Shown: positions 3,561 to 52,239, numbered from the stretch's first letter. The stretch: DNA of 64,000 nucleotides from Hemiscyllium ocellatum (GCF_020745735.1 NC_083435.1:36233090-36297089), one strand, 5' to 3'. Made by a program: numbers and translations. Notes: a model not told the origin generated them from the letters alone.

Positions 3561-5064
3561 CCAGAGAACTAGAAAAACGACCATCGCTAAACGTACTGCT
3601 GATCCCTCCATTCACACACTGACGAGGATATCTGGTCAGCGTGGACAAGTTGGACTGAACACACACACTTGTTCTGTGACTGTTTAATTCATTGACCCCA
3701 TCCCCTCAAACCCATGACCTGACATTCTGCAACCAACACTTGACCTCTCCCCAGCACCAACACTAGCTCACCGTCTCCAGATGTCTGTCAGACTCGCAGT
3801 GTATCACCCTGGACAGACAACTGGGACACAACACAGAACTCCATAACTGGATACCTAACAAGGCCCCCTCACCAGCCCACTGTGGCACCCAAACACCATT
3901 CCATTGGTACTCAACATCCCCAACACTCACCAGTGAGTTCCCAAACTGCCCCTTGCCCAACCACTGAGGAAGTGCCTTTCTGGGACACTTAACTACACCC
4001 CTCCAACCATTCACTCACTCCTTCACCTCAACCAAGGCCGATCTACCCCACCAGCACGAGTAAGGACAGGACACAGCGATATCGGGAAGAATGGGAACTG
4101 AACTGTCTGGGGAGGTAACCCCCCAGGACAGGTACAACACGATGTTTATACCCCTATCAATGGGATCCTTGGTGACCTCACTGGAGAGTGAAATCGGGAG
4201 AGGGTCAAACCAGCATTTCAACCAATCCCAACAATTCCCAACAGCCCGGAGCAGTTAAAATTATTCCCAATCAACACAGAGCTAGAAGTAAATCCAGGAA
4301 CAGAGAGAATCTTGATATATTTCCAATGTGTTTCAGAAAATTTGCAAAGCAATTGGCTGCATTCCCATCTTGGAAGTCTCATTGCATCAATGGTCATTCT
4401 ATTGGCTGTTATTGTCGGGATAATCAGAATAATCATCTGGAAAAGATCACGGAGAGGTAAGAATCAGAGAGAGGGGAATGTAGAACTGAGGGGACAGAGT
4501 GAGTGTGGGGGAATCTCCAGTACTGGGAGTACAGGGCACTGTGGGGAATGGAACTGATTGAATCCCCACACACAGATACACATGTATAAACACATCTCGT
4601 TCCCTGTCTGATCATCCTTTATGTGATCAGCCCAGACCAGGTCTAATATTGATCATTAAACCCACGCACCCAATCAGATCCTCACTGAGTGAATATTAAT
4701 GGAATGGAAGGGGTTTTCTGCATCTCCATAAAGTGTAAGGATAGACGGGAGTATGGGAATGAGGATTTCTGACACAATCCCTGTAAAACCTTCCTTCCTG
4801 CCTTGTGTGGGCACCATCTCCTTGATAAATTGTGAAGATCTCTCTCCCTTAATTAGTTTGTGCAGTTTTGGATGACTTATTACTTTGGTTTGACCCTCGC
4901 GTGTGACTCTGATACCGATCATGTTATTCCAGGCATTTGGGTTGTCTCCATCACCACCGTATTTTTAATCTCTGCCTCATGTAATGGGATTCTGGGTCAT
5001 CCCTTCTCTTGTTATCCAGCTGTTGACACTTTCCTCCCAGCGTCTGACACTTGTGATCACCTGC

Positions 5065-8400: not shown

Positions 8401-10493
8401 CAGGGGGAGAAGGAGGAACTCAAAAATTAGAAACCAATCTCACTGTTGAATGCAGATTACAAAATTCTGTCAAAGGTAATCGCCAACCGGGTCAGGTCAG
8501 CTCTGGGGTCGGTGATTCACCCTGACCAAACCTGTGCTGTGCCGGGCAGGAAGATCGCTGAGAGTCTCGCACTCCTCAGGGATACGATCGCGTACGTGCA
8601 GGACAGAGGGTTGGACGCCTGCCTGATCAGCCTGGACCAGGAGAAAGCCTTTGACAGGATATCAAACAGGTATATGAGGGATGTTCTCTCCAAAATGGGC
8701 TTTGGGGAGGGAATCTGCAATTGGATCAGACTGCTCTACACCAACATCGTCAGTGCAGTCTCAATCAATGGGTGGGAATCAGATAGCTTCCCAGTCAGAT
8801 CTGGAGTCAGGCAGGGCTGCCCTCTCTCTCCTGCCTTGTTAGTGTGCTGCATAGAGCCATTTGCCGAGTCCATCAGGAAGGATGCGAGCCTGAGAAGGGG
8901 TGACTATTCCTGGCAGCGGGGGCCTGCAGGTTAAGGCCTCCCTGTACATGGATGACGTTGCCATTTTCTGCTTGGAGCCGCTGTCCGTGCGCAGACTCAT
9001 GTGCATTTGTGACCAATTCGAACGGGCCTCGGGGGCCAAGGTAAACCGAGGCAAGAGTGAGGCCATGCTCTTCGGGAACTGGGCCGACCAATCCTTGATC
9101 CCTTTCACCGTCAGGACCGACCACCTGAAGGTGCTGGGTATTTGGTTCGGGGGGGGCTGGGGCGTGCGCCAAGTCTTGGGAGGAGCATATCAGCAAAGTG
9201 AGGCAGAAACTGGGCAGATGGAAGCTACGGTCGCTCTCCATCACGGGAAAAAACCTGGTCATCAGGTGTGAGGCACTGTCATTGCTGTTGTACGTGGCAC
9301 AGGTCTGGCCTATTCCCAGAACCTGCGCTGCTGCAGTCACCCGGGCCATCTTCCAGTTCATATGGAGGTCAAAGATGGACCAGGTCCGAAGGGACTCACT
9401 ATACAAAGATCTGGGCAACGGGGGAAAATATACACCCAATGCCACCCTCACCCTGATGGCCACCTTTGTGTGTGGCTGCATCAAGCTGTGCGTGGATCCC
9501 CGGTACGCAAACACCAAGTGTCACTACGTACTGAGGTTCTACCTGTCCCCGGTGTTGCGAAGGATGGGCCTGGCCTCGCTGCCGCGGAACGCTCCGAGTA
9601 GTTGGACCGTTCCGTACCACCTGTCCTTCGTGGAGAAATTTCTGAAGAAAAACACCTTTGACCACAAGTCCATCAGGAAGTGGTCAGCACGTAGTGTCCT
9701 CGAGACCCTTCGGGAAAAGGAGAGGGCGGATCCTGTCGAGCGGTTCCCTGAGCAGACTGTCAAAGCAATTTAGCAGAATGCCTCATCACCAGAACTTTCC
9801 AACAAGCACCAAGACATGGCTTGGCTGGTGGTGAGAAGGGCTCTACCTGTGAGATCCTTTATGCACGCCCGGACTCTCAGCCGCACCGCACGCTGCCCTC
9901 GAAGCGGCTGCGGGGGGGACGAGACTGTCACCCACCTCCTTCTGGAATGTGCCTATGCAGAGGATGTCTGGAGAGGAATGCAGTGGGGTTTGTCGAGGTT
10001 CGTCCCGAGCAGCGCCGTGACGCGGGACTCCGTGCTCTACGGCCTGTTCCCCGGGACACACACCGAGACGAATATCAACTGCGCCTGGAGGGTCATCAAC
10101 TCGGTGAAGGACGCTCTCTGGGTGGTCCGAAACCTGTTGATCTTCCAGCTGAAGGAGTTGACCCCGACTGAGTGTTGCAGACTGGCACATTCCAAGGTCC
10201 GGGACTACGTGTTGAGGGACGCGCTGAAGCTTGGGGCAGCTGCCGCCAAGGCGCGGTGGGGAAAGACCACCGTGTAACATCTGCCTGTCTAAAGAAGATC
10301 AGGGGGCCCATGCAGTCATTTGGGCTCTGCTGATGCCTCAGCTCAAAATGTAATTGTACAGACCTGTAACTAAGAATGATTACTCTGTTTTCGGTATGCA
10401 AACAAATGGAATGTTTACATGTGTATGGCATGTCCAACTGTATAAATCATGAAAGTATTTATGAATAAAGTATATTTTTGAAGTAAAAATAAA
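8401..10493 (+). mobile_element. Tx1-group (L1 clade) LINE, 3' half: RT domain, C-terminal CCHC region, 3' UTR and A-rich tail
   Basis: ORFs 8446-8934 (PISLLNADYKILSK, SLDQEKAFDR, GVRQGCPLSP), 8900-9271 (LYMDDV), 9198-9773 and 9816-10277 (CPRSGCGGDETVTHLLLEC). Tail AATAAAGTATATTTTTGAAGTAAAAATAAA. Confidence 0.92.
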
Positions 10494-33129: not shown

Positions 33130-33560
33130 CTTAAAATCCAATGGTGTTACCGTCCCTGAATCCACCAGGACCAACATCCTTGGGGTTACCATTGACCAGA
33201 AACACCATTGGACTCAGCACATACACACGGTGGCTACAAGAACAGTCAGAGACTCGGAATACTGCGGTGAGTAAGTCACCTCCTGACTCTCCAACACCTC
33301 TCCATTACCTACAAGGCACAAGCCAGGAGTGTGATGGAGTATTCCCCTCTTACCTGGATGGGTGCAGCTCCAACAACACTCAAGGAGCTTGACACCTTCC
33401 AAACCCACAGCCACTTCCATCGGGAAGGAGATGGGCAGCAGATATACAGGAACACCACCACCCTCAAATTCCCCGCCAAGCCATTCACCATCCTGATTTG
33501 GAAATATATCACTGTTCATTCACTGTCACTGGGAGAACATTCTGGAATTCCCACCCTCAG
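33130..33560 (+). mobile_element. CR1/L2-group LINE fragment
   Basis: ORFs 33038-33274 (TNILGVTIDQKHHWTQHIHTVATR) and 33331-33582 (MMEYSPLTWMGAAPTTLKELDT). Confidence 0.75.
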
Positions 33561-33733
33561 GGCACTCACCCCATTTGGATGATGTTTTGATCTCTCTGTC
33601 CTTGGTCTCCCTGCCCATAAATTCTGTTTCCTGTGCTTCCCTCTCACTCCACCTGACCAAGGGCTGATGCTCCAAACACCAGTGATTCCGAAGGAACCGA
33701 TTGGACTCTAACCTGGTGTCATGGGAATTCTGA

Positions 33734-34230
33734 CAGTAACCTGGGACACACCCGGTCTATCACTAACCAGGGTCAGTAACCTGGGACACACCCAGTCTAT
33801 CACTAACCTGGATCAGTAACCTGGGACACAACCGGTCTATCACTAACCAGGGTCAGTAACCGGGGATACACCCAGTCTATCATTAACCTGGATCAGTAAC
33901 CTGGGATAAACCCGGTCTATCACTAACCAGGGTCAGTAACCTAGGACATACCCGGTTTATCACTAACCAGGGTCAGTAACCTTGGATACACCCGATTTAT
34001 CACTAACCTGGATCAGTAACCTGGGCACACTCAATCTGTCATCAGCCTGGGTCAGTAACCTGGGACAGACTCAGTCTATCACTAACCAGGGTCAGTAACC
34101 TGGGACAGACCCAGTCTATCACTAACCAGGGTCAGTAACCTGGGTCACACTCGGTCTATCACTAACCTGGATCATAACCTGGGACACACCTGGTCTATCA
34201 CTAGCCAGGGTAGTAACCTGGGACAGACCT
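33734..34230. repeat. Minisatellite, 40 bp unit, about 12 copies
   Basis: cagtaacctgggacacacccggtctatcactaaccagggt; cagtaac recurs at 33734, 33774 and onward. Confidence 0.95.
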
Positions 34231-34299
34231 GAGAGCTGGATAGGAGCAGACTGGAGCCTTGGAGCAGAGCGAAAGCGGTAATTGAACTGGAGGTGGTTG

Positions 34300-34570
34300 T
34301 GGAGCTGGGGGAAGCTTGCTGTGAAGGTGATAGGTACATGCAAGTGGGTGGGGTTTGGGAGAATTGATGGGGATAGGTCAGTGTGGAGTGTGGAGTGGAT
34401 AGGTGGGAAGAAAAATAGACAGGTGGGACAAGTCAAGTGGAGGGTGGGGTCTGAGATGAGGTGGGGCGTGAAAGATGAGGAAACGGGATGAAGTCAACAT
34501 TGATGCTGTGTGGTTGGAGGGTCTGAAGGCGGAAGATGAGGGATTGCTCCCCCCAGGCGTGAGGTGGGCT
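34300..34570 (-). mobile_element. PLE 3' fragment (end of GIY-YIG region and purine-rich tail)
   Basis: Homologous to 22140-22410 (LIFRLQTLQPHSINVDF). Confidence 0.6.
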
Positions 34571-34932
34571 GGATTTTGCACTTTGTAGCTCAGGGTGTTG
34601 ATGCCCTTGCTTGATAGGTTGGCAAAGAAGCAAATGGTGGTAAGACATGGAGCAGATGGTGACTGAGAGCAGTTAAGAGGGAAGGTGTTTAAGCCACATG
34701 TTGAGAGATATAGTGAGGAAATAGAGGGAAATGGTCGCATATGCAGCAGAGATTTGGTGGGCTTAACGGTTTTAAACTTAGGACTGCTCCTGCTTGGAGA
34801 GGGAAGAAAGGTATACCAAAGACTGCCCGAGCAAACTTGGGCGCTTACGTAGCAGCGAGAAGGCAAAGTTGCAGTATAACAGCACTGCCTACAGAAAACG
34901 TGCAACTCAGATTCTGTCATTGGCTTGTAAAT

Positions 34933-35057
34933 CAGGGGAGAGCGCGAACGCAGTCCCCCACTACCACAAATTTTGCAGTCGAGTATCCCGCATGTGGGGA
35001 CATCGCAGGTGTCAGCACACCCAAAGTGCAATGGGATAGCCTTGACCTGGGAGCACC
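34933..35057 (-). ncRNA. RNU1: U1 snRNA gene, nt about 40-164, 5' part replaced by a Tx1 tail
   Basis: Minus strand GGTGCTCCCAGGTCAAGGCTATCCCATTGCACTTTGGGTGTGCTGAC..AATTTGTGGTAGTGGGGGACTGCGTTCGCGCTCTCCCCTG. U1A loop ATTGCAC, Sm site and SL4 are intact; followed by a 3'-box-like AATGACAGA. Confidence 0.93.
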
Positions 35058-35807
35058 TTTTTTTTATTTCAAAAATATACTTTATTCTTAAAATAGTCAT
35101 AAAATAATTTGATACACTGTACATTTGGTAATGCCATACATATGTCAACATTTACATACACAGCTCAGAATTTTCATTATTACATACAGATCTGTGCATT
35201 TCTCATTCATATATTGAGCTGAGGCGTCAGCAGAGCCCAAATGACTGCAGGGCCCCTTGATCTTCTTTAAACAGGCAGATGTTAAACGGTGGTCTTTCCC
35301 CACCGCGCCTTGGCGGCAGCTGCCCCAAGCTTCAGTGCGTCCCTCAACACGTAGTCCTGGACCTTGGAATGTGCCAGTCTGCAACACTCAGTTGGGGTCA
35401 ACTCCTTCAGCTGGAAGATCGACAGGTTTCGGACCGCCCAGAGAGCGTCCTTCACCGAGTTGATGATCCTCCAGGCGCAGTTGATGTTTGTCTCGGTGTG
35501 CGCCCCAGGGAACAGGCCGTAGAGCACGGAGTCCCGCGTCACGGCGCTGCTCGGGACGAACCTCGACAAATACCACTGCACATAGTCACCCCTCTCAGGC
35601 TCGCATCCTTCCTGATGGACTCGGCAAATGGCTCTATGCAGCACACAAACAAGGCAGGAGAGAGAGGGCAGCCCTGCCTGAATCCAGATCTGACTGGGAA
35701 GCTATCTGATTCCCACCCATTGATTGAGACTGCACTGACAATGTTGGTGTAGAGTAGTCTGATCCAATTGCAGATTCCCTCCCCAAAGCCCATTTTGGAG
35801 AGAACCT
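35058..35807 (-). mobile_element. Tx1-group LINE 3' segment with an internal deletion of about 1.07 kb at 35578
   Basis: RT piece VLSKMGFGEG..QGCPLSP..SLRGVT is fused to the C-terminal SRFVPSSAVTRDSV..RWGKTTV*. 3' UTR and tail AATAAAGTATATTTTTGAAATAAAAAAA abut U1. Confidence 0.92.
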
Positions 35808-36599
35808 CTCTCACTGTAACCTGTGCGGAGAGGCGGGCCACATGTACAAGGCCTGCCCAAGACGAGGAGACGCCACCTACGCACAGATGGCCGGAGGTGG
35901 TAACACGAGCTGGAGACCTGACTAGGACCAGCAAGGCACCACAAAACAGCACGGGAACGGCGTCTGGAGGCACCGAGAAGGAAGGGAAGGTTTTGTGGAG
36001 CAGACGGCAGACAGCAGGCGATCCAACCTCCTTCAAGGCAGGCCGAGGAAATGGAAGAGGAGGAATCAAAGGAAGCAGAGGATTGGATCACAGTCAAAAA
36101 CAGGAAGAGGAAAACTCTCGGGGGCCCCAAAGCCACCCAGAGAAGGGGGAAACGACACCAGCAAGTCGAGGATACAGGCAGCTCTTCCGATGGTGAGGAC
36201 GGGCGCAAGAAGGGTCGCCACCAGAGGAAGAGACAGAGCGCCATGGGGAGAAAGGAGGGCAGCACCACCCAGGAAGGGAAAGACGATCCCTCTGTGGGGA
36301 TGGGTAAAGGCCTCCCCCCACCCGGTGAGAACCAAGAGGTACCCACTGGCCCACAGCTCCAGGTAACTGGGAGCAGCGGTCCTGTGACAGCCCCGCTGTC
36401 AGATGGAGAACTGAACAGTGCGGACCCTGGGCTCGACACAAAGACACCAGAGCGGGGAAATGGCTCCAGCGTGGAGCCGGACAGCTACCTCAGCCCTGGG
36501 ATGGTCCAGCAGTTTGCCGTCACCACGGGGATGCACACAGCTACCCCAGAGGAGCAAGACCAGCAGCAAATGGACACTGTTAACCTTGTAAATTGTTAA
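35808..36599 (+). mobile_element. Tx1-group ORF1 C-terminal half (gag-like zinc knuckle, basic and acidic low-complexity tail)
   Basis: CNLCGEAGHMYKAC (CCHC knuckle) at 35815. ORF 36051-36599 stops 1 nt before the ORF2 ATG. Confidence 0.85.
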
Positions 36600-36600
36600 A

Positions 36601-38100
36601 ATGGGATTTAAAATTGCCAGCATCAATGTGTGTAGCATCAAATCGGCTACGCGATGTGTTTCAACGGTGGCCTTCCTGGCCAGCGTTAAAGCCGACCTCC
36701 TGTTTCTGCAGGAGTGTGGGATACCGCACCTCAGCAGCTACAGGAGATGGTCGAGCTTGTGGGCCCATGGGCAGTCAGTTTGGTCGGGGGGCAACGATAG
36801 CCGCGCCTCCGGCCTGGGTATCCTGTTGCGAGGAGGCAACGTCACCATCTCCGAGGTTAAGGAGGTGGAGGGCGGGAGCCTCCTCGTCGCCGACGTTATG
36901 TACAGGAATGCTCCCCTGAGACTGATCAATGTGTACGCCCCAGTGGGTAAGAGTGAACGGTTGGCCGTCCTGCAGCAGCTTCCACTGTTGCTGGCTACAT
37001 CCAGGCTGGTCATTCTGGCCGGAGACTTCAACTGTATCATTGATGCAGATGGACGATCCGGCGGGGGGGACAGTAAACTGGACGCCACGTCCAGTGCCCT
37101 GATGGACGCGGTAAAAGATGCCAAGCTGCACGACGTCTTCAGCACCCCTGCAGACGGAGCGCAGCGTAGATACACCTGGTCACGGGCAGACGGGTCTATC
37201 CGCTCAAGGATAGATTACCTGTTTGTGTCCCGAACGCTCTCGGTCAGATCCACCGATGTCAAGCCGGTGTTCTTCTCTGACCACTGCCTCCTGCTGGCCG
37301 ACTGTCACCTACAGAACGAGCAGCGGGTGGGTAAGGGAACGTGGAAGCTGAACACCAAGCTGTTGACCCCGGGAAACATTGAGGAGCTCAAGAGGGACTA
37401 CGCAGGTTGGAGAACCGTGAAGCCCCTCTTTGAGTCTCCAGCAGACTGGTGGGAAACAGTTAAAGGGAACATCAAGAGGTTCTTCATCCTCAAAGGTGTT
37501 CAGGAGGCGAGAGAGAGGCGGGGAAAACTGTCCCAGCTCCAGGAAAGTATGCAGAACCTGCTCCTGCTGCAGACGATGGGGGTCGATGTCACGGAGGACC
37601 TCAAGGAGGTGAAGGGCCAGCAACCCTCACTCTTTGCCTCGGAGGCCTCCAAGATAATCTTCCGGTCCAGGGTCCGCTCGGTGGAGCAGGACGAGACGTG
37701 CTCACGTTTCTTCTTCCAGAAGGTGCACAAAGAGAGCTCTGTGCTCGGCAACCTGAAGGAAGAAGACGGCTCGACAACGTCATCTCAGGCTGACGTCATG
37801 AGGATCAGTAAATCCTTCTATGCCAGTCTGTATGACGCGAAGCCAACCGACAGCTCAGCCTCCCAGTCGTTCCTGTCGTCTATCACGGAGGTCTTAGACG
37901 ACAGAACACGCGAGAGGCTGGACCAGCCGCTATCTCTGGACGAGCTGACCAAGGCCCTCGAGTCCTTCGAAAAGAATAAAACTCCTGGAAGCGATGGCTT
38001 ACCGGTCGAGCTCTATTCCGCTCTGTGGGACTTGATTGGCCAGGACCTGCTGGAGGTGTATGTCAGTATGCTTCGGGCAGGTACCATGAGCGAATCCTTG
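36601..38100 (+). mobile_element. Tx1-group ORF2 N-terminal 500 codons, uninterrupted (APE endonuclease, linker, start of RT)
   Basis: ASINV, FLQECG, NVYAP, AGDFN, SRIDY, FSDH and KTPGSDGLPVELY. Homology ends at AGTMSES; the rest of ORF 36601-38277 is unrelated read-through. Confidence 0.93.
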
Positions 38101-38346
38101 TTAGTTAGTACATTCCTTTATTATCTCTATGTTCCATTAGCTTTAACATTTTATGATTTCTGTGCGTCATCATTGTATTTTGCCCTCTGTGTAAGAATTC
38201 TTTGGTTTCTTGCCCAAGGTTACCATGTTCCTGGCATAACAGAGGTGACTTCTAGTTCATGCTTCATTATGGCCTAGTCGATCATTAGTTTCATAATTTA
38301 GCTTTTATTCATTAAACTTCAGTTTTAGTACAGAAATTACCTCACT

Positions 38347-38640
38347 NNNNNNNNNNNNNNNNNNNNNNNNNNNNNNNNNNNNNNNNNNNNNNNNNNNNNN
38401 NNNNNNNNNNNNNNNNNNNNNNNNNNNNNNNNNNNNNNNNNNNNNNNNNNNNNNNNNNNNNNNNNNNNNNNNNNNNNNNNNNNNNNNNNNNNNNNNNNNN
38501 NNNNNNNNNNNNNNNNNNNNNNNNNNNNNNNNNNNNNNNNNNNNNNNNNNNNNNNNNNNNNNNNNNNNNNNNNNNNNNNNNNNNNNNNNNNNNNNNNNNN
38601 NNNNNNNNNNNNNNNNNNNNNNNNNNNNNNNNNNNNNNNN
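38347..38640. other. Assembly gap
   Basis: Run of N. Confidence 1.
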
Positions 38641-39865
38641 TACATTAACCATATCACAGGGGACCAACCCCGGTTCAATGAGGAATGTGGGAGGGATCAC
38701 AGGAGCAGGATCAGGCAGAGATGAAAAATGATGTCTTTTTTTATTCACTGGAGAGACGTGGGAATCACTGGCTGCTGGAATTTATTTCCCATCCCTGACT
38801 GTCCTTGAGAATGTGGGGGTGAGGTACCTTCCTGAACAGCAGCAGTTCATGTGGTGGTGGGACACCCACAATGTCATTAGGGAGGGAATTCCAGGATTTT
38901 GACCCAGTGACAGTGAAGGAAGTGCAATATATTTCCAAGTCAGGATGGTGAGTGGCTTGGAGGGGAACTTGTAAGTGATGGTGTAGCTCAGTGAAGTGTC
39001 AGATCAGGATTGATCGTGCAGTAAACAGCAGAGGGAGCAGAGTCAGAACTTAGTGATTCCACAATCGATCGATAAGATCGAAGCTCTGCTGTCCTGTCAC
39101 ATCCAGGTGTGAAAATTGAACAACTCCCTGGAGGAGAAAGAGGCTTCTCATTCTGGAATGATACTTTGGTCACTGGGTTCCTGCTCCAGAGACAATAACC
39201 ATGTATCACCCCTCCCCCAGTTTTTGTATTGATTCAGTTTTTGTGGGATGTGGGTGTCTCTGACTGGCCAGCATTTATTACCCGTCCCTAGTTGCCCTTG
39301 AGAAGGTGGTGGTGATCTGCCTTCCTGAACTGCTGCAGTCTACCTCATGTGGGTTGACCCACAATGCCATGAGGGAGGGAAATCCAGGATTTTGACCAGC
39401 GACAGTGAAGGAATGGTGATATATTTCCGAGTCAGGATGGTGAGTGGCTTGGAGGGGAACATGAAGGTGGTGGTGTTCCCATATATCTGCTGACCTTGAC
39501 CTTCCAGATGGAGGTGGTTGTGGGTTTGGAAGGCACTGTTTAAGGATCTTTGATGAATTTCTGTAGATAGCAAACACTGCTGTAACTGAGTGTCAGTGAT
39601 GGAGGGACTGGATGTTGGTGGATGCAGTGCCAATCAGTTGGGTTGCTAGGTCCTGGATGGTGTCAAGCTTCTTCAGTGTTGAGATGGCTGTACACATCCA
39701 GGCAAGCAGGGAGTATTCCATCACATTCCTGACCTGGGTCTTGTTGGTGGACAGGCTTTGGGAAATCAGGAGACGAGTTACTTGCTGCAGTATCCCCAGC
39801 CTCTGACCTGCTCTTGTAGACACTGCATTTATGTGGTGAGTCCAACCGAGTTTCTGATCAATGAT
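38641..39865 (-). repeat. Outer arm of an inverted segmental duplication (partner about 6915-8150), made of CR1/L2-group LINE pieces and unique spacer
   Basis: ORF 39340-39633(-) is identical to 7154-7447(+); ORF 38988-39209(-) differs from 7578-7799(+) at 3 aa. Confidence 0.92.
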
Positions 39866-40862
39866 AACTCACTGACATACTGACATACACCTCCAGCAGG
39901 TCCTGGCCAATCAAGTCCCACAGAGCGGAATAGAGCTCGACCGGTAAGCCGTTGCTTCCGGGAGTTTTATTCTTTTCGAAGGACTCGAGGGCCTTGGTCA
40001 GCTCGTCCAGAGATAGCGGCTGGTCCAGACTCTCACGTGTTCTGTCGTCTAAGACCTCCGTGACAGACGACAGGAACGACTGGGAGGCCGCGCTGTCGAT
40101 CGGCTTCGCGTTATACAGACTGGCATAGAAGGATTTACTGATCCTCATGATGTCAGCCTGAGATGATGTTATCGAGCCGTCTTCTTCCTTCAGGCTGCTG
40201 AGCACAGAGCTCTCTTTGTGCACCTTCTGGAAGAAGAAACGTGAGCACGTCTCGTCCTGCTCCACGGTTCTCCAACCTGCGTAGTCCCCCTTGAGCTCCT
40301 CAATGTTTCCCGTGGTCAACAGCTTTGTGTTCAGCTTCCACGTTCCCTTACCCGCCCGCTGCTCGTTCTGTAGGTGACAGTCGGCCAGCAGGAGGCAGTG
40401 GTCAGAGAAGAACACCGGCTTGATGTCGGTAGATCTGACCGAGAGCGCTCGGGACACAAACAGGTAATCTATCCTTGAGCGGATAGACCCGTCTGCCCGT
40501 GACCAGGTGTATCTACGCTGCGCTCCGTCTGCAGGGGTGCTGAAGATGTTGTGCAGCTTGGCATCTTTTACCGTGTCCATCAGGGCTCTGGACGTGGCGT
40601 CCAGTTTACTGTCCCCCCCGCCGGATCGTCCATCTGCATCAATGATACAGTTGAAGTCTCCGGCCAGAATGACCAGCCTGGACGTAGCCAGCAACAGTGG
40701 AAGCTGCTGCAGGACGGCCAACCGTTCACTCTTACCCACTGGGGCGTACACATTGATCAGTCTCAGGGGAGCATTCCTGTACATAACGTCGGCGACGAGG
40801 AGGCGCCCGCCCACCACCTCCTTAACCTCGGAGATGGTGAAGTTGCTTCCTTGCAACAGGAT

Positions 40863-41075
40863 GGAGCTGAAAATGTGTTACTGGAAAAGCGCAGCAGGTC
40901 AGGCAGCATCCAAGGAGCAGGAGATTCGACGTTTCGGGCATAAGCCCTTCTTCAGGAATGAGGCTTATGCCCAAAATGTCGAATCTCCTGTTCCTTGGAT
41001 GCTGCCTGACCTGCCGGTTGTTTTCCAGCAACACATTTTCAGCTCTGATCTCCAGCATCTGCAGACCTCACTTTC
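40863..41075. mobile_element. PLE-tail (family 1) insertion arranged as an inverted repeat, with a 15-bp TSD
   Basis: TCCTYGCAACAGGAT at 40848-40862 and 41076-41090. The left half (minus) and right half (plus) are copies of the same tail. Confidence 0.85.
40924..40959 (-). ncRNA. Minimal type I hammerhead ribozyme motif
   Basis: Minus strand ATTC-CTGAAGA-A-GGGC ttat GCCC-GAAAC-GTC-GAAT; all core positions intact. Confidence 0.8.
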
Positions 41076-41851
41076 TCCTCGCAACAGGATACCCAGGCCG
41101 GAGGCGCGGCTGTCGTGCCCCCCCGACCAAACTGACTGCCCATGGGCCCACAAGCTTGACCATCTCCTGTAGCTGCTGAGGTGCGGTATCCCACACTCCT
41201 GCAGAAACAGGAGGTCGGCTTTAACGCTGGCCAGGAAGGCCATCGTAGAAACACATCGCGTAGCCGATTTGATGCTACACACATTGATGCTGGCAATTTT
41301 AAACCCCATTTTAACAATTTACAAGGTTAACAGTGTCCATTTGCTGCTGGTCTTGCTCCTCTGGGGTAGCTGTGTGCATCCCCGTGGTGACGGCAAACTG
41401 CTGGACCTTCCCAGGGCTGAGGTAGCTGTCCGGCTCCACGCTGGAGCCATTTCCCCGCTCTGGTGTCTTTGTGTCGAGCCCAGGGTCCGCACCGTCCAGT
41501 TCTCCATCTGACAGCAGGGCTGTCACAGGACCGCTGCTCCCAGTTACCTCTCCTTTTACCTGGAGCTGGTGGTGAAGAATCAGTGGACAGAGCTGAATAT
41601 AATCTGTCGAATAAATTGTTGAAAGAGGCAATTTGAGCAACACTGGAATAGATAGGCAGTAATAGAGGGAAATGGAGCAAATGCGGGCGCAGATTTGGTT
41701 ATTTGAAGGGCTTGGTCCTCTTATGAAAAGCTTTGAACACAGCGGTTTATTGCAGGATGAAGTAAGACGTGCGGTATTATCTGCCGATTTGGGTGAAACT
41801 GAATTGAACGTCGGTGCGCGGGAGATAGGAAGCCGTATGAAGCACAAGTGA

Positions 41852-41865
41852 GCGCCATCTACTGA
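41852..41865 (-). promoter_or_regulatory. CTCF-like motif just downstream of the U1 gene
   Basis: Minus strand TCAGTAGATGGCGC is a 13/14 match to CCASYAGRKGGCRS. Motif match only. Confidence 0.45.
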
Positions 41866-41889
41866 AAGATCTGCTTTTTGCTGGTAAAT

Positions 41890-42016
41890 CAGGGGAGAGC
41901 GCGAACGCAGTCCCCCACTACCACAAACTTTGCAGTCGAGTATCCCGCATTTGGGGACATCGCAGGCGTCAGCACACCCAAAGTGCAATGGGATAGCCTC
42001 GTCCTGGGAGCACCAC
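41890..42016 (-). ncRNA. RNU1: U1 snRNA gene, nt about 38-164, 5' part replaced by a Tx1 tail
   Basis: 5 differences from the 34933-35057 copy over 125 nt; Sm site reads AAGTTTGTG; followed by a 3'-box-like AAAAAGCAGA. Confidence 0.93.
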
Positions 42017-42460
42017 ATTTTTTTTTATTTCAAAAATATACTTTATTCGTTAAATATTCATAAAATAATTTGATGGACTGTACGTTAGGTAATGCCATTC
42101 ATATTTCCACATTTACATAAACAGCTCAGAATTATCATTATTACATACAGATCTGTGCATCTCTCACTCACATATTGAGCTAAGGCGTCAGCAGAGCCCA
42201 AATGACTGAAGGGCCCCCTGATCTTCTTAGACAGGCAGATGTTACACGGTGGTCTTTCCCCACCGCGTCTTGGCGGCAGCTGCCCCAAGCTTCAGCGTGT
42301 CCCTCAACACGTAGTCCTGGACCTTGGAATGTGCCAGTCTGCAACACTCAGTCGGGGTCAACTCCTTCAGCTGGAAGATCAACAGGTTTCGGACCACCCA
42401 GAGAGCGTCCTTCACCGAGTTGATGATCCTCCAGGCACAGTTGATGTTCGTCTCGGTGTC
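42017..42460 (-). mobile_element. Tx1-group LINE 3' end, 5'-truncated
   Basis: DTETNINCAWRIINSVKDALW..RWGKTTV*, 3' UTR and tail AATAAAGTATATTTTTGAAATAAAAAAAA abutting U1. Confidence 0.92.
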
Positions 42461-45400
42461 CCTGCACCACCCTGTTGCTGCTGTCCCTGCACCACCATGT
42501 TGCTGCTGTCCCTGCACCATCCTGTTACTGCTGTCCCTGACCCATCCTGTTCCTGTTGTCCCTGCACCATCCTGTTACTGCTGTCCCTGCACCATCATGT
42601 TACTGCTGTCCCTGCACCATCCTGTTACTGCTGTCCCTGCACCATCCTGTTACTGCTGTCCCTGCACCATCCTGTTACTGCTGTCCCTGCACCATCCTGT
42701 TACTGGTTTCCCTGCACCACCCTGTTACTGGTTTCCCTGCACCATCCTGTTACTGCTGTATCTGCACAATCCTGTCACTGTTGTCCCTGACCCATTCAGT
42801 TCCTGCTGTCCCTCACTCATCCTATTACTGATGTCCCTGCACCATCCTGTTACTGCTATCCCTGACCCATCCTGTTACAGCTGCCCCTGCACCATCCTGT
42901 TGCTGCTGTCTCTGCACCATCCTGTTACTGCTGTCCCTGCACCACCCTGTTCCTGCTGTCTCTGCACCATCCTGTTACTGCTCTCCCAGTAGCATCCTGT
43001 TATTGCTGTCCCTGCACCATCCTGTTACTGCTGTGCCTGCACCATCCTGTTCCTGCTGTCCTTGCACCATCCTGTTACTGCTGTCCCTGACCCATCCTAT
43101 TACTGCTGTCCCTGCACCACCCTGTTACTGTTGTCCCTGCACCATCCTGTTACTGGTTTCCCTGCACCATCCTGTTACTGCTGTCCCTGCACCACCCTGT
43201 TACTGCTGTCTCTGCACCATCCTGTTACTGCTGTATCTGCACAATCCTGTCACTGTTGTTCCTGACCCATTCTGTTCCTGCTGTCCCTGACTCATCCTAT
43301 TACTGATGTCCTGACACCATCCTGTTACTGCTGTCCCTGACCCATCGTGTTCCTGCCCTTCATGACCCATCCTGTTACTGCTGTCCCTGACCACCCTGTT
43401 ACTGCTGTCCCTGACCCACCCTGTTACTGCTGTCCCTGACCCACCCTGTTACTGCTGTCCCTGACCAATCCTGGTCCTGCTGTCTCTGACCCATCCTGTT
43501 ACTGCTGTCCCTGACCCATCTTGTTCCTGCTGTCCCTGCAGCACCCTGTTACTGCTGTCCCTGCACCATCCTGTTACTGCTGTCCCTTCACCATCCTGTT
43601 ACTGCTCTCCCTGACCATCCTGGCACTGCTGTCCCTGCACCACTCTGTTACTGCTGTCCCTGACCCATTCTGTTACTGCTGCCCCTGCACCACCCTGTTA
43701 CTGCTGTCCCTGCACCATCCTGTTACTGCTGTCCTTGCACCATCCTGTTACTGCTGTCCCTGCACCACCCTGTTATTGCTGTCCCAGATCCATCCTGTTA
43801 CTACTTGTCCCTGATCCACCCTGTTATTGTTGTCCCTGCACCATCCTGTTACTGCTGTCCGTGCACCATTATGTTACTGCTGTCCCTGCACCATTCTGTT
43901 ACTGCTGTCCCTGACCCATCCTCTTACTGCTATCCCTGCACCATCCTGTTACTGCTGTTCCTGACCCACCCTGTTACTGCTGTCCCTGCACCATCCTGTT
44001 ACTGCTGTCCCTGACCCATCCTGTTACTGCTGTCCCTGCACCATCCTGTTACTGCTGTCCCTGACCCATCCTGTTACTGCTGTCCCTGCACCATCCTGTT
44101 ACTGCTGTCCCTGACCCATCCTGTTACTGGTGTCCCTGCACCATCCTGTTTCTGCTGTCCCTGCACCATCCTGTTACTGCTGTCCTTGCACCATCCTGTT
44201 ACTGCTGTCCCTGCACCATCCTGTTACTGCTGTCCCTGACCCACACTTTTACTGCTGTCCTTGCACCATCCTGTTACTGCTGTCCCTGACCCATCCTGTT
44301 ACTGCTGCCCCTGCACCACCCTGTTACTGCTGTCCTTGCACCACCCTGTTACAGCTGCCCCTGCACCATCCTGTGACTGCTGTCCCTGTCCTATGCTATT
44401 ACTGCCGTCCCTGACCCATCCTGTTGCTGATGGCCTTGCACCATCCCGTCACTGCTGTCCCTGGTCTATCCTGTTACTGCTGTCCCTGCACCATTCTTTT
44501 ACTGCTGACCCTGCACCACCCTGTTACTGCTGTCCCTGCACCATCCTGTTACTGCTGTCCCTGCACCATCCTGTTACTGCGGTCTCTGCACCATCCTGTT
44601 ACTGCTGTCCCTGACCCAGCCTGTTACTGCTGTCCCTGACCCACCCTGTTACTGCTGTCTCTGCACCATCCTGTTACTGCTGTCCCTGACCCATCCTGTT
44701 ACTGCTGTCCCTGACCCATCCTGTTTCAGCTGTCCCTGCACCATCCTGTTACTGCTGCCCGTGCACCATCCTGTTACTGCTGTCCCTGCACCATCCTCTT
44801 ACTGCTGTCCTTGCACCATCCTGTTACTGCTGTCCTTGCACCATCCTGTTTCTGCTGTCCCTGACCCATCCTGTTACTGCTGTCCCTGACCCATCCTGTA
44901 ACTGCTGTCCCTGACCCATCCTGTTACTGCTGTCCCTGCAGCATCCTGTTAATCCTGTCCCTGATCCATTCTGTTACTGCTGTCCGTGCTCCATCCTGTT
45001 ACTGCTGTCCCTGCACCATCGTGTTGCTGCTGTCCCTGACCCATCCTATTACTGCTGTCCCAGACCCATCCTGTTACTGCTGTCCGTGCACCATCCTGTT
45101 ACTGCTGTCCCTGACCCATCCTGTTACTGCTGCCCCTGCACCATCCTGTTACAGCTGTTCGTGCACCATCCTGTTACTGCTGTGCCTGCACCATTCTGTT
45201 ACTGCTGTCCCTGCATCATCCTGTTACTGCTGTCCCTGACCCATCCTCTTACTGCTGTCCCAGATCCATCCTGTTACTGCTGTCCCTGCACCATCGTGTT
45301 GCTGCTGTCCATGACTCATCCTATTACTGTTGTCCCAGACCAATCCTGTTACTGCTGTCCCTGCACCATCCTCTTACTGCTGTCCTTGCACCATCCTGTT

Positions 45401-48400
45401 ACTGCTGTCCTTGCACCATCCTGTTACTGCTGTCTCTGCACCATCCTGTTACTGCTGTCTCTGCACCATCCTCTTACTGCTGTCCCTGACCCATCCTGTT
45501 ACTGCTGTCCCTGCACCATCCTGTTACAGCTGTTCGTGCACCATCCTGTTTCAGCTGTCCCTTCACCATCCTGTTACTGCTATCCCTGATCTATCCTCTT
45601 ACTGCTGTCCCTGACCCATCCTGTTACTGCTGTCCCTGCAGCATCCTGTTAATCCTGTCCCTGATCCATTCTGTTACTGCTGTCCGTGCTCCATCCTTTT
45701 ACTGCTGTCCCTGCACCATCGTGTTGCTGCTGTCCCTGACCCATCCTCTTACTGCTGTCCCAGACCCATCCTGTTACTGCTGTCCGTGCACCATCCTGTT
45801 ACTGCTGTCCCTGACCCATCCTGTTACTGCTGCCCCTGCACCATCCTGTTACAGCTGTTCGTGCACCATCCTGTTACTGCTGTGCCTGCACCATTCTGTT
45901 ACTGCTGTCCCTGCATCATCCTGTTACTGCTGTCCCTGCATCATCCTGTTACTGCTGTCCCTGACCCATCCTCTTACTGCTGTCCCAGATCCATCCTGTT
46001 ACTGCTGTCCCTGCACCATCGTGTTGCTGCTGTCCGTGACTCATCCTATTACTGTTGTCCCAGACCAATCCTGTTACTGCTGTCCCTGCACCATCCTGTT
46101 ACTCCTGTCCCTGACCCATCTTGTTACTGCTGTCCCTGCACCATCCTGTTACTGCTGTCCCTGACCCACCCTGTTACTGCTGTCCCTGCAGCATCCTGTT
46201 AATCCTGTCCCTGATCCATTCTGTTACTGCTGTCCGTGCACCATCCTGTTACTGCTGACCCTGACCCACCCTGTTCCTGCTGTCCTTCCACCATCCTGTT
46301 ACTGCTGTATCTGCACAATCCTGTCACTGTTGTCCCTGACCCATTCTGTTACTGCTGACCCTGACCCACCCTGTTCCTGCTGTCCTTGCACCATCCTGTT
46401 ACTGCTGTATCTGCACAATTCTGTCACTGTTGTCCCTGACCCATTCTGTTACTGCTGTCCCCGACTCATCCTATTACTGTTGTCCTGGCACCATCCTGTT
46501 ACTGCTGTCCCTGACTCATTGTGTTCCTGCCCTTCATGACCCATCCTGTTACTGCTGTCCCTGACCACCCTGTTACTGCTGTCCCCGCACCATCCTGTTA
46601 CTGCTGTCCCTTCACCATTCTGTTATTGCTGTCCCTGCACCATTCTGTTACTGCTGTCCCTGCAGCATCCTGTTACAGCTGTCCGTGCACCATCCTGTTA
46701 CTGCTGTGCCTGCACCATTCTGTTACTGTTGTCCCTGCATCATCCTGTTACTGCTGTCCCTGACCCATCCTCTTACTGCTGTCCCAGATCCATCCTGTTA
46801 CTGCTGTCCCTGCACCATTGTGTTACTGCTGTCCCTGACCCATCTTGTTACTGCTGTCCCTGACCCACCTTGTTACTGCTGTCCCTGACCCATCCTGTTA
46901 CTGCTGTCCTTGCACCATCCTGTTACTACTGTCTCTGCACCGTCCTGTTACTGCTGTCTCTGCACCATCCTGTTACTGCTGTACCTGCACCATCCTGTTA
47001 CTGCTGTCCCTGACCCATCGTGTTCCTGCCCTTCATGACCCATCCTGTTACTGCCTTCCCAGACCACCCTGTTAGTTCTGTCCCTGCACCATTCTGTTAC
47101 TGCTGTCCTTGCACCATCCTGTTACTGCTGTCCCTGATCTATCCTGTTACTGCTGTCCCTGCACCACCCTGTTACTGGTTTCCCTGCACCATCCTGTTAC
47201 TGCTGTATCTGCACAATCCTGTCACGGTTGTCCCTGACCCATTCTGTTACTGCTGTCCCTGACCACCCTGTTACTGCTGTCCTCGCACCATTCTGTTATT
47301 GCTGTCCCTGCACCATTCTGTTACTGCTGTCCCTGACCCATCCTGTTACTGCTGTCCCTGCACCATTCTGTTACTGCTGTCCCTGACCCATCCTGTTACT
47401 GCTGTCCTTGCACCATCCTGTTACTGCTGTCCCTGACCCATCCTATTACTGCTGTCCCAGACCCATCCTGTTAGTGCTGTCTCTGCACCATCCTGTTACT
47501 GCTGTCCCAGACCCATCCTGTTACTGCTGTCCCTGCACCATCCTGTTACTGCTGTCCCTGACCCATCTTGTTACTGCTGTCCGTGCACCATCCTGTTACT
47601 GCTGTCCCTGACCCATCCTGTTACTGCTGCCCCTGCACCATCCTGTTACAGCTGTTCGTGCACCATCCTGTTACTGCTGTGCCTGCACCATTCTGTTACT
47701 GCTGTCCCTGCATCATCCTGTTACTGCTGTCCCTGCATCATCCTGTTACTGCTGTCCCTGACCCATCCTCTTACTGCTGTCCCAGATCCATCCTGTTACT
47801 GCTGTCCCTGCACCATCGTGTTGCTGCTGTCCGTGACTCATCCTATTACTGTTGTCCCAGACCAATCCTGTTACTGCTGTCCCTGCACCATCCTGTTACT
47901 CCTGTCCCTGACCCATCTTGTTACTGCTGTCCCTGCACCATCCTGTTACTGCTGTCCCTGACCCACCCTGTTACTGCTGTCCTTGCACCATCCTGTTACT
48001 ACTGTCTCTGCACCATCCTGTTACTGCTGTCCCTGCACCATCCTGTTACTGCTGTCCCTGACCCATCCTGTTACTGCTGTCCCTGCACCATCCTGTTGCT
48101 GCTATCCCTGACCCATCGTATTACTGCTGTCCCTGCATCATCCTGTTAGTGCTGTCCCTGCACCATTCTGTTACTGCTATCCCTGCACCATCCTCTTACT
48201 GCTGTCCCTGACCCATCCTGTTTCAGCTGTCCCTGCACCACCCTGTTACTGGTTTCCCTGCACCATCCTGTTACTGCTGTATCTGCACAATCCTGTCACT
48301 GTTGTCCCTGACCCATTCTGTTACTGCTGCCCCTGCACCATCCTGTTACTGCTGTCCCTGCACCATCCTGTTACTGTTGTCCCCGCACCATCCTGTTACT

Positions 48401-51400
48401 GCTGTCCCTTCACCATTCTGTTATTGCTGTCCCTGCACCATCCTGTTACTGCTGTCCCTGACCCATCCTGTTACTGCTATCCCTGATCTATCCTCTTACT
48501 GCTGTCCCTGCACCATCCTGTTACTGCTGTCCCTGCACCATCCTGTTACTGCTCCCCCTGACCCACCCTGTTACTGCTGTCCTTGCACCATCCTGTTACT
48601 GCTGTCCCTGATCCATCCTGTAACTGCTGTCCCTGACCCATCCTGTTACTGCTGTCCCTGCAGCATCCTGTTAATCCTGTCCCTGATCCATTCTGTTACT
48701 GCTGTCCGTGCACCATCCTGTTACTGCTGACCCTGACCCACCCTGTTCCTGCTGTCCTTGCACCATCCTGTTACTGCTGTATCTGCACAATCCTGTCACT
48801 GTTGTCCCTGACCCATTCTGTTACTGCTGACCCTGACCCACCCTGTTCCTGCTGTCCTTGCACCATCCTGTTACTGCTGTATCTGCACAATCCTGTCACT
48901 GTTGTCCCTGACCCATTCTGTTACTGCTGTCCCTGACTCATCCTATTACTGTTGTCCTGGCACCATCCTGTTACTGCTGTCCCTGACTCATCGTGTTCCT
49001 GCCCTTCATGACCCATCCTGTTACTGCTGTCCCTGACCACCCTGTTACTGCTGTCCCCGCACCATCCTGTTACTGCTGTCCCTTCACCATTCTGTTATTG
49101 CTGTCCCTGCACCATTCTGTTACTGCTGTCCCTGCAGCATCCTGTTACAGCTGTCCGTGCACCATCCTGTTACTGCTGTGCCTGCACCATTCTGTTACTG
49201 TTGTCCCTGCATCATCCTGTTACTGCTGTCCCTGACCCATCCTCTTACTGCTGTCCCAGATCCATCCTGTTACTGCTGTCCCTGCACCATCGTGTTACTG
49301 CTGTCCCTGACCCATCTTGTTACTGCTGTCCCTGACCCACCTTGTTACTGCTGTCCCTGCACCATCCTGTTACTACTGTCTCTGCACCGTCCTGTTACTG
49401 CTGTCTCTGCACCATCCTGTTACTGCTGTCCCTGCACCATCCCGTTACTGCTGTCCCTGACCCATCGTGTTCCTGCCCTTCATGACCCATCCTGTTACTG
49501 CCTTCCCAGACCACCCTGTTAGTTCTGTCCCTGCACCATTCTGTTACTGCTGTCCTTGCACCATCCTGTTACTGCTGTCCCTGATCTATCCTGTTACTGC
49601 TGTCCCTGCACCACCCTGTTACTGGTTTCCCTGCACCATCCTGTTACTGCTGTATCTGCACAATCCTGTCACGGTTGTCCCTGACCCATTCTGTTACTGC
49701 TGTCCCTGACCACCCTGTTACTGCTGTCCTCGCACCATCCTGTTACTGCTGTCCCTTCACCATTCTGTTATTGCTGTCCCTGCACCATTCTGTTACTGCT
49801 GTCCCTGACCCATCCTGTTACTGCTGTCCCAGACCCATCCTGTTAGTGCTGTCTCTGCACCATCCTGTTACTGCTGTCCCTGCACCATCCTGTTACTGCT
49901 GTCCCTGACCCATTCTGTTGCTGCTGTCCCTGACCCATCCCGTCCCTTCTGTCCCTGCACCATCGTATTACTGCTGTCCCTGACCCACCCTGTTACTGCT
50001 GTCCCTGCACCATCCTGTTTCAGCTGTCCCTGCACCATCCTGTTGCTGCTGTCCCTGACCCATCCCGTCCCTTCTGTCCCTGCACCATCGTATTACTGCT
50101 GTCCCTGACCCACCCTGTTACTGCTGTCCCTGCACCATCCTGTTACTGTTGTCCCTGCACCCTCCTGTTACTGCTGTCCCTGCACCATCCTGTTACTGCT
50201 GTCCCTTCACCATCCTGTTACTGCTCTCCCTGACCCATGCTGTTTCTGCTGTTCATGACCCATCCTGTTACTGCTGTCCCTGACCATCCTGTTACTGCTG
50301 TCCCTGCACCACTCTGTTGCTGCTGTCCCTGCACCACCCTGTTACTGCTGTCCCTGACCCATCCTGTTACTGCTGCCCCTGCACCATCCTGTTACTGCTA
50401 TCCCTGATCTATCCTCTTACTGCTGTCCCTGCACCATCCTGTTACTGCTGTCCCTGATCCATCCTGTTACTGCTGTCCCTGCACCATCCTGTTACTGCTA
50501 TCCCTGACCCATCCTGTTACTGCTGTCCCTGCACCATCCTGTTACTGCTGTCCCTGCACCCTGTTACTGCTGTCCTTGCACCATCCTGTTACTGCGGTCT
50601 CTGCACCATCCTGTTAATGCTGTTCCTTACCCATCCTGTTACTGCTGTGCCTGCACCATCCTGTTACTGCTGTCCCTGCACCATCCTGTTACTGCTGTCC
50701 CAGATCCATCCTGTTACTGCTGTCCCTGCACCATCGTGTTGCTGCTGTCCGTGACCCATCCTATTACTGCTGTCCCAGACCAATCCTGTTACTGCTGTCC
50801 CTGACCCATCTTGTTACTGCTGTCCCTGACCCATCTTGTTACTGCTGTCCCTGACCCACCCTGTTACTGCTGTCCTTGCACCATCCTGTTACTACTGTCT
50901 CTGCACCATCCTGTTACTGCTGTCCCTGCACCATCCTGTTACTGCTGTCCCTGACCCATCCCGTTCCTGCCCTTCTTGACCCATCCTGTTACTGCCTTCC
51001 CAGACCACCCTGTTAGTGCTGTCCCTGCACCATTCTGTTACTGCTGTCCCTGCACCATCCTCTTACTGCTGTCCTTGCACCACCCCGTTACTGCTGTCCC
51101 TGACCCACCCTGTTACTGCTGTCCTTGCACCATCCTGTTACTACTGTCTCTGCACCATCCTGTTACTGCTGTCCCTGCACCATCCTGTTACTGCTGTCCC
51201 TGACCCATCCCGTTCCTGCCCTTCTTGACCCATCCTGTTACTGCCTTCCCAGACCACCCTGTTAGTGCTGTCCCTGCTCCATCCTGTTACTGCTGTCCGT
51301 GCACCATCCTGTTACTGCTGTCTCTGACCCACCCTGTTACTGCTGCCCCTTCACCATCCTGTTGCTGCTGTCCGTGCACCACCCTGTTACTGCTGTCCCT

Positions 51401-52235
51401 GACCCATCCTGATTCTGCTGTCCCTGACCCATCCTGTTCCTGCTCTCCCAGTAGCATCCTGTTACTGCTGTCGCTGCACCATCCTGTTACTGCTGTCCCT
51501 GCACCTTCCTGTTACTGCTGTCCCTGACCCATCTTGTTACTGCTGTCCCTGCACCATCCTGTTACTGCCGTCCCTGACCCATCCTGTTGCTGCTGTCCCT
51601 GCAGCATCCTGTTACTGCTGTTATAGCACCATCCCGTTACTGCTGTCCCTAATCTATCCTGTTACTGCTGTCCGTGCACCATCCTGTTACTGCTGTCCCT
51701 GACCCACCCTGTTACTGCTGTCCCTGCACCATCCTGTTACTGCTGTCTGTGCACCACCCTGTTGCTGCTGTCCCTGCACCATCCTGTTACTGCTGTCCCT
51801 GATCCATCCTGTTACTAATGTCCCTGCAGCATCCTGTTAATCCTGTCCCTGCTCCATCCTGTTACTGCTGTCCCTGCACCATCCTGTTACTGCTATCCCT
51901 GCACCATCCTGTTATTGCTGTCTCTGACCCATCCTGTTACTGCTATCCCTGCACCATCCTGTTATTGCTGTCTCTGACCCAACCTGTTACTGCTGTCCCT
52001 GACCCACCCTGTTACTGCTGTCCTTGCACCTTCCTGTTGCTGCTGTCCCTGACCAATCCTGTTACTGCTGTCCTTGCACCTTCCTGTTACTGCTGTCCCT
52101 GCACCATCCTGTTACTGCTGTCCCTGATCCATCCTGTCACTGCTGTCCCTGCACCATCCTGTTACTGCTGTCCCTGACCCATCCTGTTACTCATGTCCCT
52201 GACCCATCCTGTTACTCATGTCCCGGTGCCATCCT
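42461..52235. repeat. Very long minisatellite, 25 bp unit (ccatcctgttactgctgtccctg[ca/ac]), about 390 copies
   Basis: 25-bp period (e.g. 44041, 44066, 44091). The many Cys/Leu/His ORFs are frame rotations of the unit. Confidence 0.98.
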
Positions 52236-52239
52236 GTTG

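Follow-up and report, generated by a model that had tools for sequence, protein, structure and literature searches.

The 64,000-nucleotide (nt) stretch of the Hemiscyllium ocellatum genome analysed here (GCF_020745735.1 NC_083435.1:36233090-36297089), which we call the window, lies at 36.233-36.297 Mb of contig C113 in a 3.98-Gb assembly and carries two junctions between a long interspersed nuclear element (LINE) and genes for the U1 small nuclear RNA (snRNA). What our results describe is a Tx1-like LINE that is mostly dispersed and has in U1 a hotspot that is recurrent and inherited. Copies have entered U1 genes independently, at nearly the same position and in a single orientation, and the family nevertheless prefers U1 rather than being specific for it, because about 98% of its copies lie elsewhere.

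Sequence alignment placed both junctions on the minus strand, where the LINE tail and its poly-A run directly into the 3′ part of U1. Rfam reports U1 (RF00003) matches above its threshold at 34933-35096 (minus strand, 82.1 bits) and 41890-42057 (minus strand, 83.1 bits), and in each only the 3′ part is true U1. When the pieces are numbered by eye against the intact 164-nt U1 genes of the same genome, copy 1 reads ...GAATAAAGTATATTTTTGAAAT, eight A and then U1 G40 to G164, and copy 2, with the same LINE tail, reads ...GAAAT, nine A, one T and then U1 G38 to G164. The first-pass annotation of this DNA had put the joints at about nt 40 and about nt 38, and the alignment makes both positions exact. 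An apparent 3-nt deletion common to the two copies (GGTGCTCCC) was rejected: the string corresponds to U1 GGCGCTCCC carrying a CpG-to-TpG substitution at nt 42, which leaves the numbering at nt 40 and nt 38. The features at the junctions are these (positions counted within the window):

34933-35057, minus strand: 3′ part (nt 40-164) of a U1 snRNA gene, copy 1, type-B body with C42T (Rfam and alignment)
35058-35065, minus strand: poly-A (A8) of LINE copy 1, abutting U1 G40 (sequence)
41890-42016, minus strand: 3′ part (nt 38-164) of a U1 snRNA gene, copy 2 (Rfam and alignment)
42017-42026, minus strand: poly-A of LINE copy 2, A9 (42018-42026) with one additional T (42017) at the junction (sequence)
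33217-34932, minus strand: genuine U1 type-B 3′ flank with the 3′-box region and a 40-bp minisatellite at 33734-34229 (blastn, 92-96% to L049/L050; TRF)
39876-41889, minus strand: genuine U1 type-A 3′ flank (blastn to L031 and L039)

Both U1 pieces run on into flanks of true U1 genes, 3′-box region included. The flank of the copy 1 U1 piece matches the end of the 2.6-kb type-B array (C113:37.20 Mb) over at least 1.7 kb, down to at least 33217, and that of copy 2 matches the 12.5-kb type-A unit over at least 1.2 kb, down to at least 40695. An old LINE fragment in the latter flank (41549-39876) is a component of the type-A repeat unit and is present also downstream of intact type-A U1 genes. Neither a U1 5′ half nor a U1 promoter was found anywhere in the window. 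A full-length U1 carries the 5′ splice-site recognition end and stem-loop I; here the LINE tail has replaced nt 1-39 in copy 1 and nt 1-37 in copy 2, and both matches are thus remnants of disrupted genes. The two copies are independent insertions, since their U1 gene types, joining bases and 5′ structures all differ.

Three main types of U1 gene (A, B and C) are present on C113 and unplaced contigs. Type B forms a 28-unit, 2.6-kb tandem array at C113:37.203-37.274 Mb, and a unit at the upstream edge of this array (L065) has been hit by the LINE. Type A occurs in 12.5-kb repeats at 39.78-40.86 Mb with a variant at 5.5-6.9 Mb, and type C is found on many unplaced contigs at spacings of about 50-60 kb. 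About 94 U1 copies are continuous over nt 13-70.

Genome-wide there are at least 25 U1-LINE junctions, on 10 or more contigs and with at least 5 U1 flank types. A search with the LINE tail plus U1 gave 21 junction loci, an exact-pattern search gave 19 junctions, including additional ones on C190, C110, C108 and C60, and an anchor at U1 nt 44-69 gave 16 LINE-joined 3′ halves and one joined to a divergent relative. The joining base is U1 G37, G38, G40 or G41 in every junction, and the exact pattern was found 19 times in sense and never in antisense orientation. At least 14 independent events can be told apart when the joining base, the flank type of the U1 gene, the LINE subfamily and the point of 5′ truncation are taken together. 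The tails of the U1-joined LINEs are 78-99.5% identical to L091, the natural copy that serves as our yardstick for LINE positions, and the copies are truncated at 4599, 4241, 3989, 3842, 3685 or 1974, some being more than 1.6 kb long. Some loci are duplicates (L070/L071 with three on C190; L073/L075; L076/L077; L078-80), and L066 has the identical U1 unit subtype to window copy 2.

One event, at L073/L075, is a complete insertion in which U1 promoter-proximal sequence and U1 1-45 are followed by a 12-nt filler, an internally deleted LINE, A8 and U1 38-164, with an 8-bp target-site duplication (TSD), GTGGTTCT. At L092/L093 the LINE 5′ end is joined to U1 1-34. A search for U1 5′ junctions and TSDs had been suggested in the first-pass annotation, and it yields three LINE-joined U1 5′ halves and the one TSD-bearing event at L073/L075. 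All 17 broken U1 3′ halves in the exact-anchor census are joined to this LINE lineage and none to any other repeat. The divergent relative (L094, C113:37288960-37289900) is joined to U1 G38, 12 kb upstream of the type-B U1 array; it is 81% identical in the end of open reading frame 2 (ORF2), and its 3′ untranslated region (UTR) has no other genomic copy. L065 is a young copy at the edge of the array, and the 900 nt examined on its 5′ side are an unrelated reverse transcriptase (RT) element.

About 120-130 U1 loci with 5 nt and one strand each offer about 650 positions, and with 1216 tail 27-mers in 3.98 Gb about 1e-4 junctions are expected by chance, whereas the exact pattern gives 19 and the full count is at least 25. 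The enrichment is therefore of the order of 1e5 and chance is excluded. The earlier proposal of U1 as a recurrent target is borne out by these independent, strand-specific events.

Other U1 chimeras are present in the genome. In six copies (C185:13711734, 13973435 and 15925799; C847:46513; C1070:6928 and 37784) U1 nt 1-30 is joined directly to the 5′ end of U2 snRNA (…GATACCATGATTAGTGCTTCTCGGCCTTTTGGCTAAGATCAA…), which recalls the snRNA-headed SINEU elements. At C108:38898419 and C185:23189976, U1 nt 1 to about 53 is followed by a common non-U1 sequence (…GCTGAGAAC), and these fusions are possibly another U1-headed repeat.

The dispersed copies set the limit on how the hotspot is to be described. 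The tail 27-mer occurs 1216 times in the genome and about 10 of these exact tails are U1-joined. Among the best 30 tail matches 29 have unrelated, non-U1 flanks, the remaining one being the window query copy itself, and there is no U1-joined tail among the first 100 listed of the young subfamily (contigs C1-C111). A U1-specific sub-subfamily was sought with a diagnostic 42-mer for the group of L064, L065 and L067, which stand for three independent U1 events, and was rejected: 3 of the 45 copies are in U1 and 42 are dispersed on about 30 contigs, several with confirmed non-U1 flanks. Overall the U1 share is about 1-2% of copies, rising to about 7% in one sub-subfamily, and the dispersed copies have ordinary 8-20 bp TSDs at unrelated sites. 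Target-specific elements are recognised by having most of their copies in the target or, by the working criterion of PMC4494074, more than 20% of their flanks, and the U1 share lies below either value; independent insertions at the same target position and in the same orientation, a further criterion, are found at U1 G37-G41. The first-pass annotation had proposed a U1-specific family and had named mostly random 3′ flanks as the observation that would speak against it. Such flanks are what most genomic copies have, down to the narrowest sub-subfamily, and the claim of specificity is not supported.

Outside U1 the element also shows signs of returning to the same sites. At five loci (L007, L026, L022, L010 and L092/L093) the 5′ TSD of an older, 5′-truncated copy is the exact position of the poly-A of a younger one, indicating that one nick position served for two insertions of different age. 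About 28% of non-U1 tails are followed by internal sequence of the same family, head-to-tail (L007, L008, L010, L013, L017, L019, L022, L026 and L087), in the same orientation in 10 of 11 cases. About 10% of young tails, among the matches listed, continue into ORF1 of the element itself at GCGGACGTGTACTGCC, a place within the first RNA-binding domain, and this joint varies by a few bases and is fuzzy like the U1 joint. Nick-site re-use and the ORF1 joints fit a moderate site selectivity.

The element belongs to the L1 superfamily and is Tx1-like. ORF1 of Tx1-clade elements is of the RNA-binding-domain and CCHC-knuckle type, as opposed to the Transposase_22 type of vertebrate L1, and the ORF1 region of L012 has the former composition (RBD_ZCCHC3_1st, RBD_ZCCHC3_2nd and zf-CCHC with three knuckles). 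The L091 ORFs contain Pfam Exo_endo_phos (the apurinic/apyrimidinic-type endonuclease, APE), RVT_1 and zf-RVT, which is the Tx1 ORF2 architecture of N-terminal APE, RT and C-terminal zinc-binding CCHC region; Exo_endo_phos is found also on a window ORF (36601-38277). The element ends in AATAAA and a short poly-A. An AlphaFold model of ORF2 (predicted local distance difference test, pLDDT, 85) was compared by Foldseek and has Xenopus Tx1 ORF2 (P14381) as its best reviewed match, with E 1.8e-64 and 28% identity over 781 residues, versus 24% identity to mammalian L1 ORF2p. The nearest database proteins are unnamed amphibian RTs (43-48%), together with partial elasmobranch proteins, and a clade name sought by sequence search and in the ESM Atlas returned generic RT names only. 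Membership of the Tx1 clade is likely, judged from the domains and the best Swiss-Prot match, and the earlier assignment to the Tx1 group holds in the form of an L1-superfamily, Tx1-like element.

Taken together, insertion at U1 is recurrent, independent and strand-specific and has left a TSD, and we think it probable that a moderately site-selective Tx1-like LINE turns U1 stem-loop I into a recurrent hotspot by its own nicking preference. We infer that this preference resides in the element's endonuclease/ORF2p. A young, high-copy LINE would insert at many genomic sites via ordinary target-primed reverse transcription, and its nicking machinery would have a heritable preference for the U1 bottom strand on the 3′ side of stem-loop I (nt 35-41). 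About 1-7% of insertions, depending on the subfamily, would then be primed at the U1 site, always in U1-sense orientation, and the two window junctions would be two independent products of the hotspot. In most events, including both window copies, the upstream U1 half was lost or rearranged, either as the LINE inserted or later.

A staggered cut by an endonuclease, with target-primed reverse transcription as the next step, is indicated by the strict orientation and by the TSD. In a tree of 430-nt tails the U1-joined copies stand at every rung of a ladder-like topology, beside dispersed copies of like age, and in this non-random sample the U1 label changes 10 times versus 16.2 times in shuffles. 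The spread in the tail tree, the L094 relative at G38, the absence of any unrelated repeat at the site in the exact-anchor census and the orientation with the TSD all favour a preference encoded by the element. Some points weigh against such a preference. The U1 junction is fuzzy across 5 nt, unlike that of classic site-specific elements; no motif common to U1, the own-ORF1 hotspot and the TSD-defined sites emerged, apart from a weak Y|A or N|GT where the nick lies; LINE-joined U1 5′ halves number 3 versus at least 16 3′ halves with comparable exact anchors, where simple target-primed reverse transcription with a TSD predicts otherwise; and the tail tree was sampled non-randomly. More tentatively, U1 arrays may be a long-term home of the LINE lineage, with a U1 homing encoded by APE/ORF2p and kept through the subfamilies and the sister lineage while most progeny scatter. 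If this were correct, no LINE known before it would home to U1 snRNA genes, and the element would represent a living intermediate form, placed between Tx1 elements that are generalists and those that are strictly site-specific.

Other origins of the junctions have to be weighed against an element-encoded preference. The U1 copies could belong to a strictly U1-specific sublineage with a specialised APE, the dispersed copies being non-specific relatives that share only the 3′ end. The clustering of the U1 label in the tail tree would agree with this, as would the small clade of L064, L065 and L067 with its three independent U1 events and the divergent relative, whose only detectable copy sits in U1; we find the idea doubtful, however, because that same clade is overwhelmingly dispersed and old dispersed copies stand alongside the old U1 copies. 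The cause could also lie on the side of the target, if U1 stem-loop I breaks or exposes a 3′-OH (for example by very high transcription, R-loops or hairpin extrusion) and the LINE uses such ends without its endonuclease. A joint that is fuzzy across 5 nt, a site at the loop/stem boundary of stem-loop I and an upstream U1 half that is absent in most events, as expected of one-ended or degraded breaks, are all in line with such a cause. It is improbable, though, given that the 17 broken U1 3′ halves of the census are without exception joined to this one lineage, which favours the element over a general fragility of the site, that orientation is strict and that the 8-bp TSD event records the staggered cut typical of an endonuclease.

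Very unlikely in our view is an origin at the RNA level, in which the RT begins at the 3′ end of U1 snRNA, is halted at the U1-70K-bound loop (nt 28-37) and switches template to the LINE poly-A, the chimeric complementary DNA then entering U1 genes by homologous recombination. The junction does lie exactly 3′ of the U1-70K loop, the frequent head-to-tail and own-ORF1 joints would suit such jumps, and the absent U1 5′ halves would be accounted for as well. Yet the genuine U1 gene flanks extend over at least 1.4 kb and each match their own unit type, none of the 21 loci is a LINE-U1(38-164) chimera followed by random sequence, and the event that has a TSD and, on its upstream side, the promoter and U1 1-45 cannot arise in this way. 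Least credible of all is the spread of one ancestral insertion by segmental duplication and the array dynamics of U1 clusters, which the first-pass annotation had itself named as an alternative. Some loci are clear duplicates, and the U1 unit subtype common to L066 and window copy 2 is of the kind it predicts; it was rejected on the four junction bases, the at least 5 U1 flank types, the tails with their 1-20% divergence from the reference copy and different LINE ages, and the differing 5′ truncation points. Our preferred reading remains a nicking preference of the element for U1 stem-loop I.

The LINE copies in the window themselves are arranged as follows:

35066-35580, minus strand: LINE copy 1, ORF2 end and 3′ UTR with AATAAA, L091 4160-4685 (blastn to L091, 95-96%)
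35582-35825, minus strand: RT fragment of LINE copy 1, L091 2647-2878 (blastn, 98.7%; Pfam RVT_1 on ORF 35539-36069)
35813-38100, plus strand: LINE segment of opposite orientation, ORF1 zinc-knuckle end, then ORF2 APE and linker, L091 39-2339 (blastn, 95.7%; Pfam Exo_endo_phos)
38347-38640, no strand: N run (gap or masked) that conceals the sequence 5′ of the inverted segment
42027-42459, minus strand: LINE copy 2, 5′-truncated, last ~430 nt only, L091 4241-4683 (blastn, 94%)
42457-52238, minus strand: 25-bp minisatellite of 392 units (9.8 kb), adjoining the 5′ end of copy 2 (TRF)

Copy 1 has an internal deletion between its RT fragment and its 3′ piece, and its layout, as far as sequence tells, looks like a twin-priming 5′ inversion. 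Segment 35813-38100 either arose by such an inversion of copy 1 or is a separate copy; the end that would decide is hidden by the N run. The first-pass annotation had pointed to an APE still open in the 36601-38100 copy. The frame is indeed open (ORF 36601-38277, 558 aa) with intact APE catalytic motifs, and the copy is non-functional: ORF2 homology (BLASTP, 96% identity; APE and linker) covers aa 1-500 only and breaks at 38100, and there is no RT. Next to copy 2 the nearest minisatellite unit has the sequence CAACAGGGTGGTGC, which differs from U1 nt 31-44 by one mismatch and in which GTGGTGC, the 7 bases that open the 3′ U1 piece of this copy, is present; possibly it is what remains of U1 here, together with a 7-bp TSD.

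The exact 25-bp minisatellite unit occurs 375 times on a single strand, and the first 100 matches listed fall in two loci, both in the U1-rich region (window 42457-52238 and C113:36.4907-36.50 Mb). Its units differ from U1 nt 31-44 by 3-4 mismatches on average and by 1 in the LINE-adjacent unit, while shuffled probes average 6.5, and a U1-LINE 5′ junction may have been the seed of the minisatellite. LINE segments 36361-38100 (plus strand) and 41549-39876 (minus strand) are inverted relative to each other and 96-98% mutually identical, closer than to other copies, and the arms around the N run end near-symmetrically, each at a distance of about 890 nt from a midpoint near 38990. The similarity and the near-symmetry could come from gene conversion between inverted repeats, from a palindromic rearrangement or from the assembly; an inverted segmental duplication was rejected as the main cause of LINE 41549-39876, which belongs to the normal type-A U1 unit. 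Another 5′-truncated copy of the same family lies at 8402-10493 (plus strand) with a non-U1 flank.

Site-specific LINEs such as R2 and Keno serve as models of the way in which retroelements reach safe havens and as a basis from which programmable gene insertion can be developed, and what is usually seen of their site specificity is only its finished, all-or-none form. The family described here combines both behaviours, a strand-specific 5-nt U1 hotspot with roughly 1e5-fold enrichment and about 98% dispersed copies, so that the origin of target specificity becomes testable with natural proteins and a defined target of 20-30 bp. Roughly 1/5 of the U1 loci in the genome are disrupted by LINE junctions and insertions occur at array edges, which suggests that the element may shape the evolution of U1 gene arrays. 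U1 would join the small RNA genes used by elements without long terminal repeats (non-LTR elements).

The targets that Kojima and colleagues give for Tx1 and other LINEs are U2 (Keno, Utopia), U5, 5S (Mutsu), tRNA spacers (Dewa), microsatellites and transposons (PMC4494074, PMC3706591, PMC8869645, PMC4640811), and Tx1 elements have been linked to U1/U2-derived sequences (PMC4494074). Full-text literature searches, which did not cover Repbase Reports, found no LINE targeting U1. The only published U1-homing transposons we found are the Dada-U1 DNA transposons, which go to a fixed position in U1 snRNA genes (PMC3706591, PMC8869645); they resemble our element in homing to U1 and differ from it as class II elements with a transposase, a TSD of 6-7 bp and a site, CTGCGAAT/GCGAAT, that lies further 3′ in U1 than the one used here (nt 37-45). 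Utopia, a LINE with a restriction-like endonuclease that is specific for U2 (PMC4640811), is likewise a LINE lineage targeting snRNA genes, but of another endonuclease type and clade and with U2 as its target. Tx1L of Xenopus laevis (P14381), whose target is Tx1D, shares the architecture of APE, RT and zinc-binding C-terminus; its target is another one, and 28% identity makes it a distant relative only. Crocodilian Tx1-Mar and other Tx1 families have a target preference for a Mariner DNA transposon or microsatellites (PMC4494074). Our element is like them in showing preference rather than absolute specificity, with other copies elsewhere, and unlike them in its preferred target and in staying under the more than 20% of flanks used in that study. 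As presented in the papers that cite its description (Kojima & Fujiwara 2004, cited in PMC4494074, PMC3706591), Keno is a U2 snRNA gene-specific non-LTR retrotransposon of the Tx1 clade. Compared with Keno as described there, the LINE reported here differs in its target (U1 in place of U2), in having about 1-7% of its copies in that target where Keno is called target-specific, and in a junction that varies over 5 nt, and it has in common with Keno that it is an APE-type LINE of the L1/Tx1 group that carries a poly-A tail and sits in sense orientation at a defined place within a multicopy Pol II snRNA gene.
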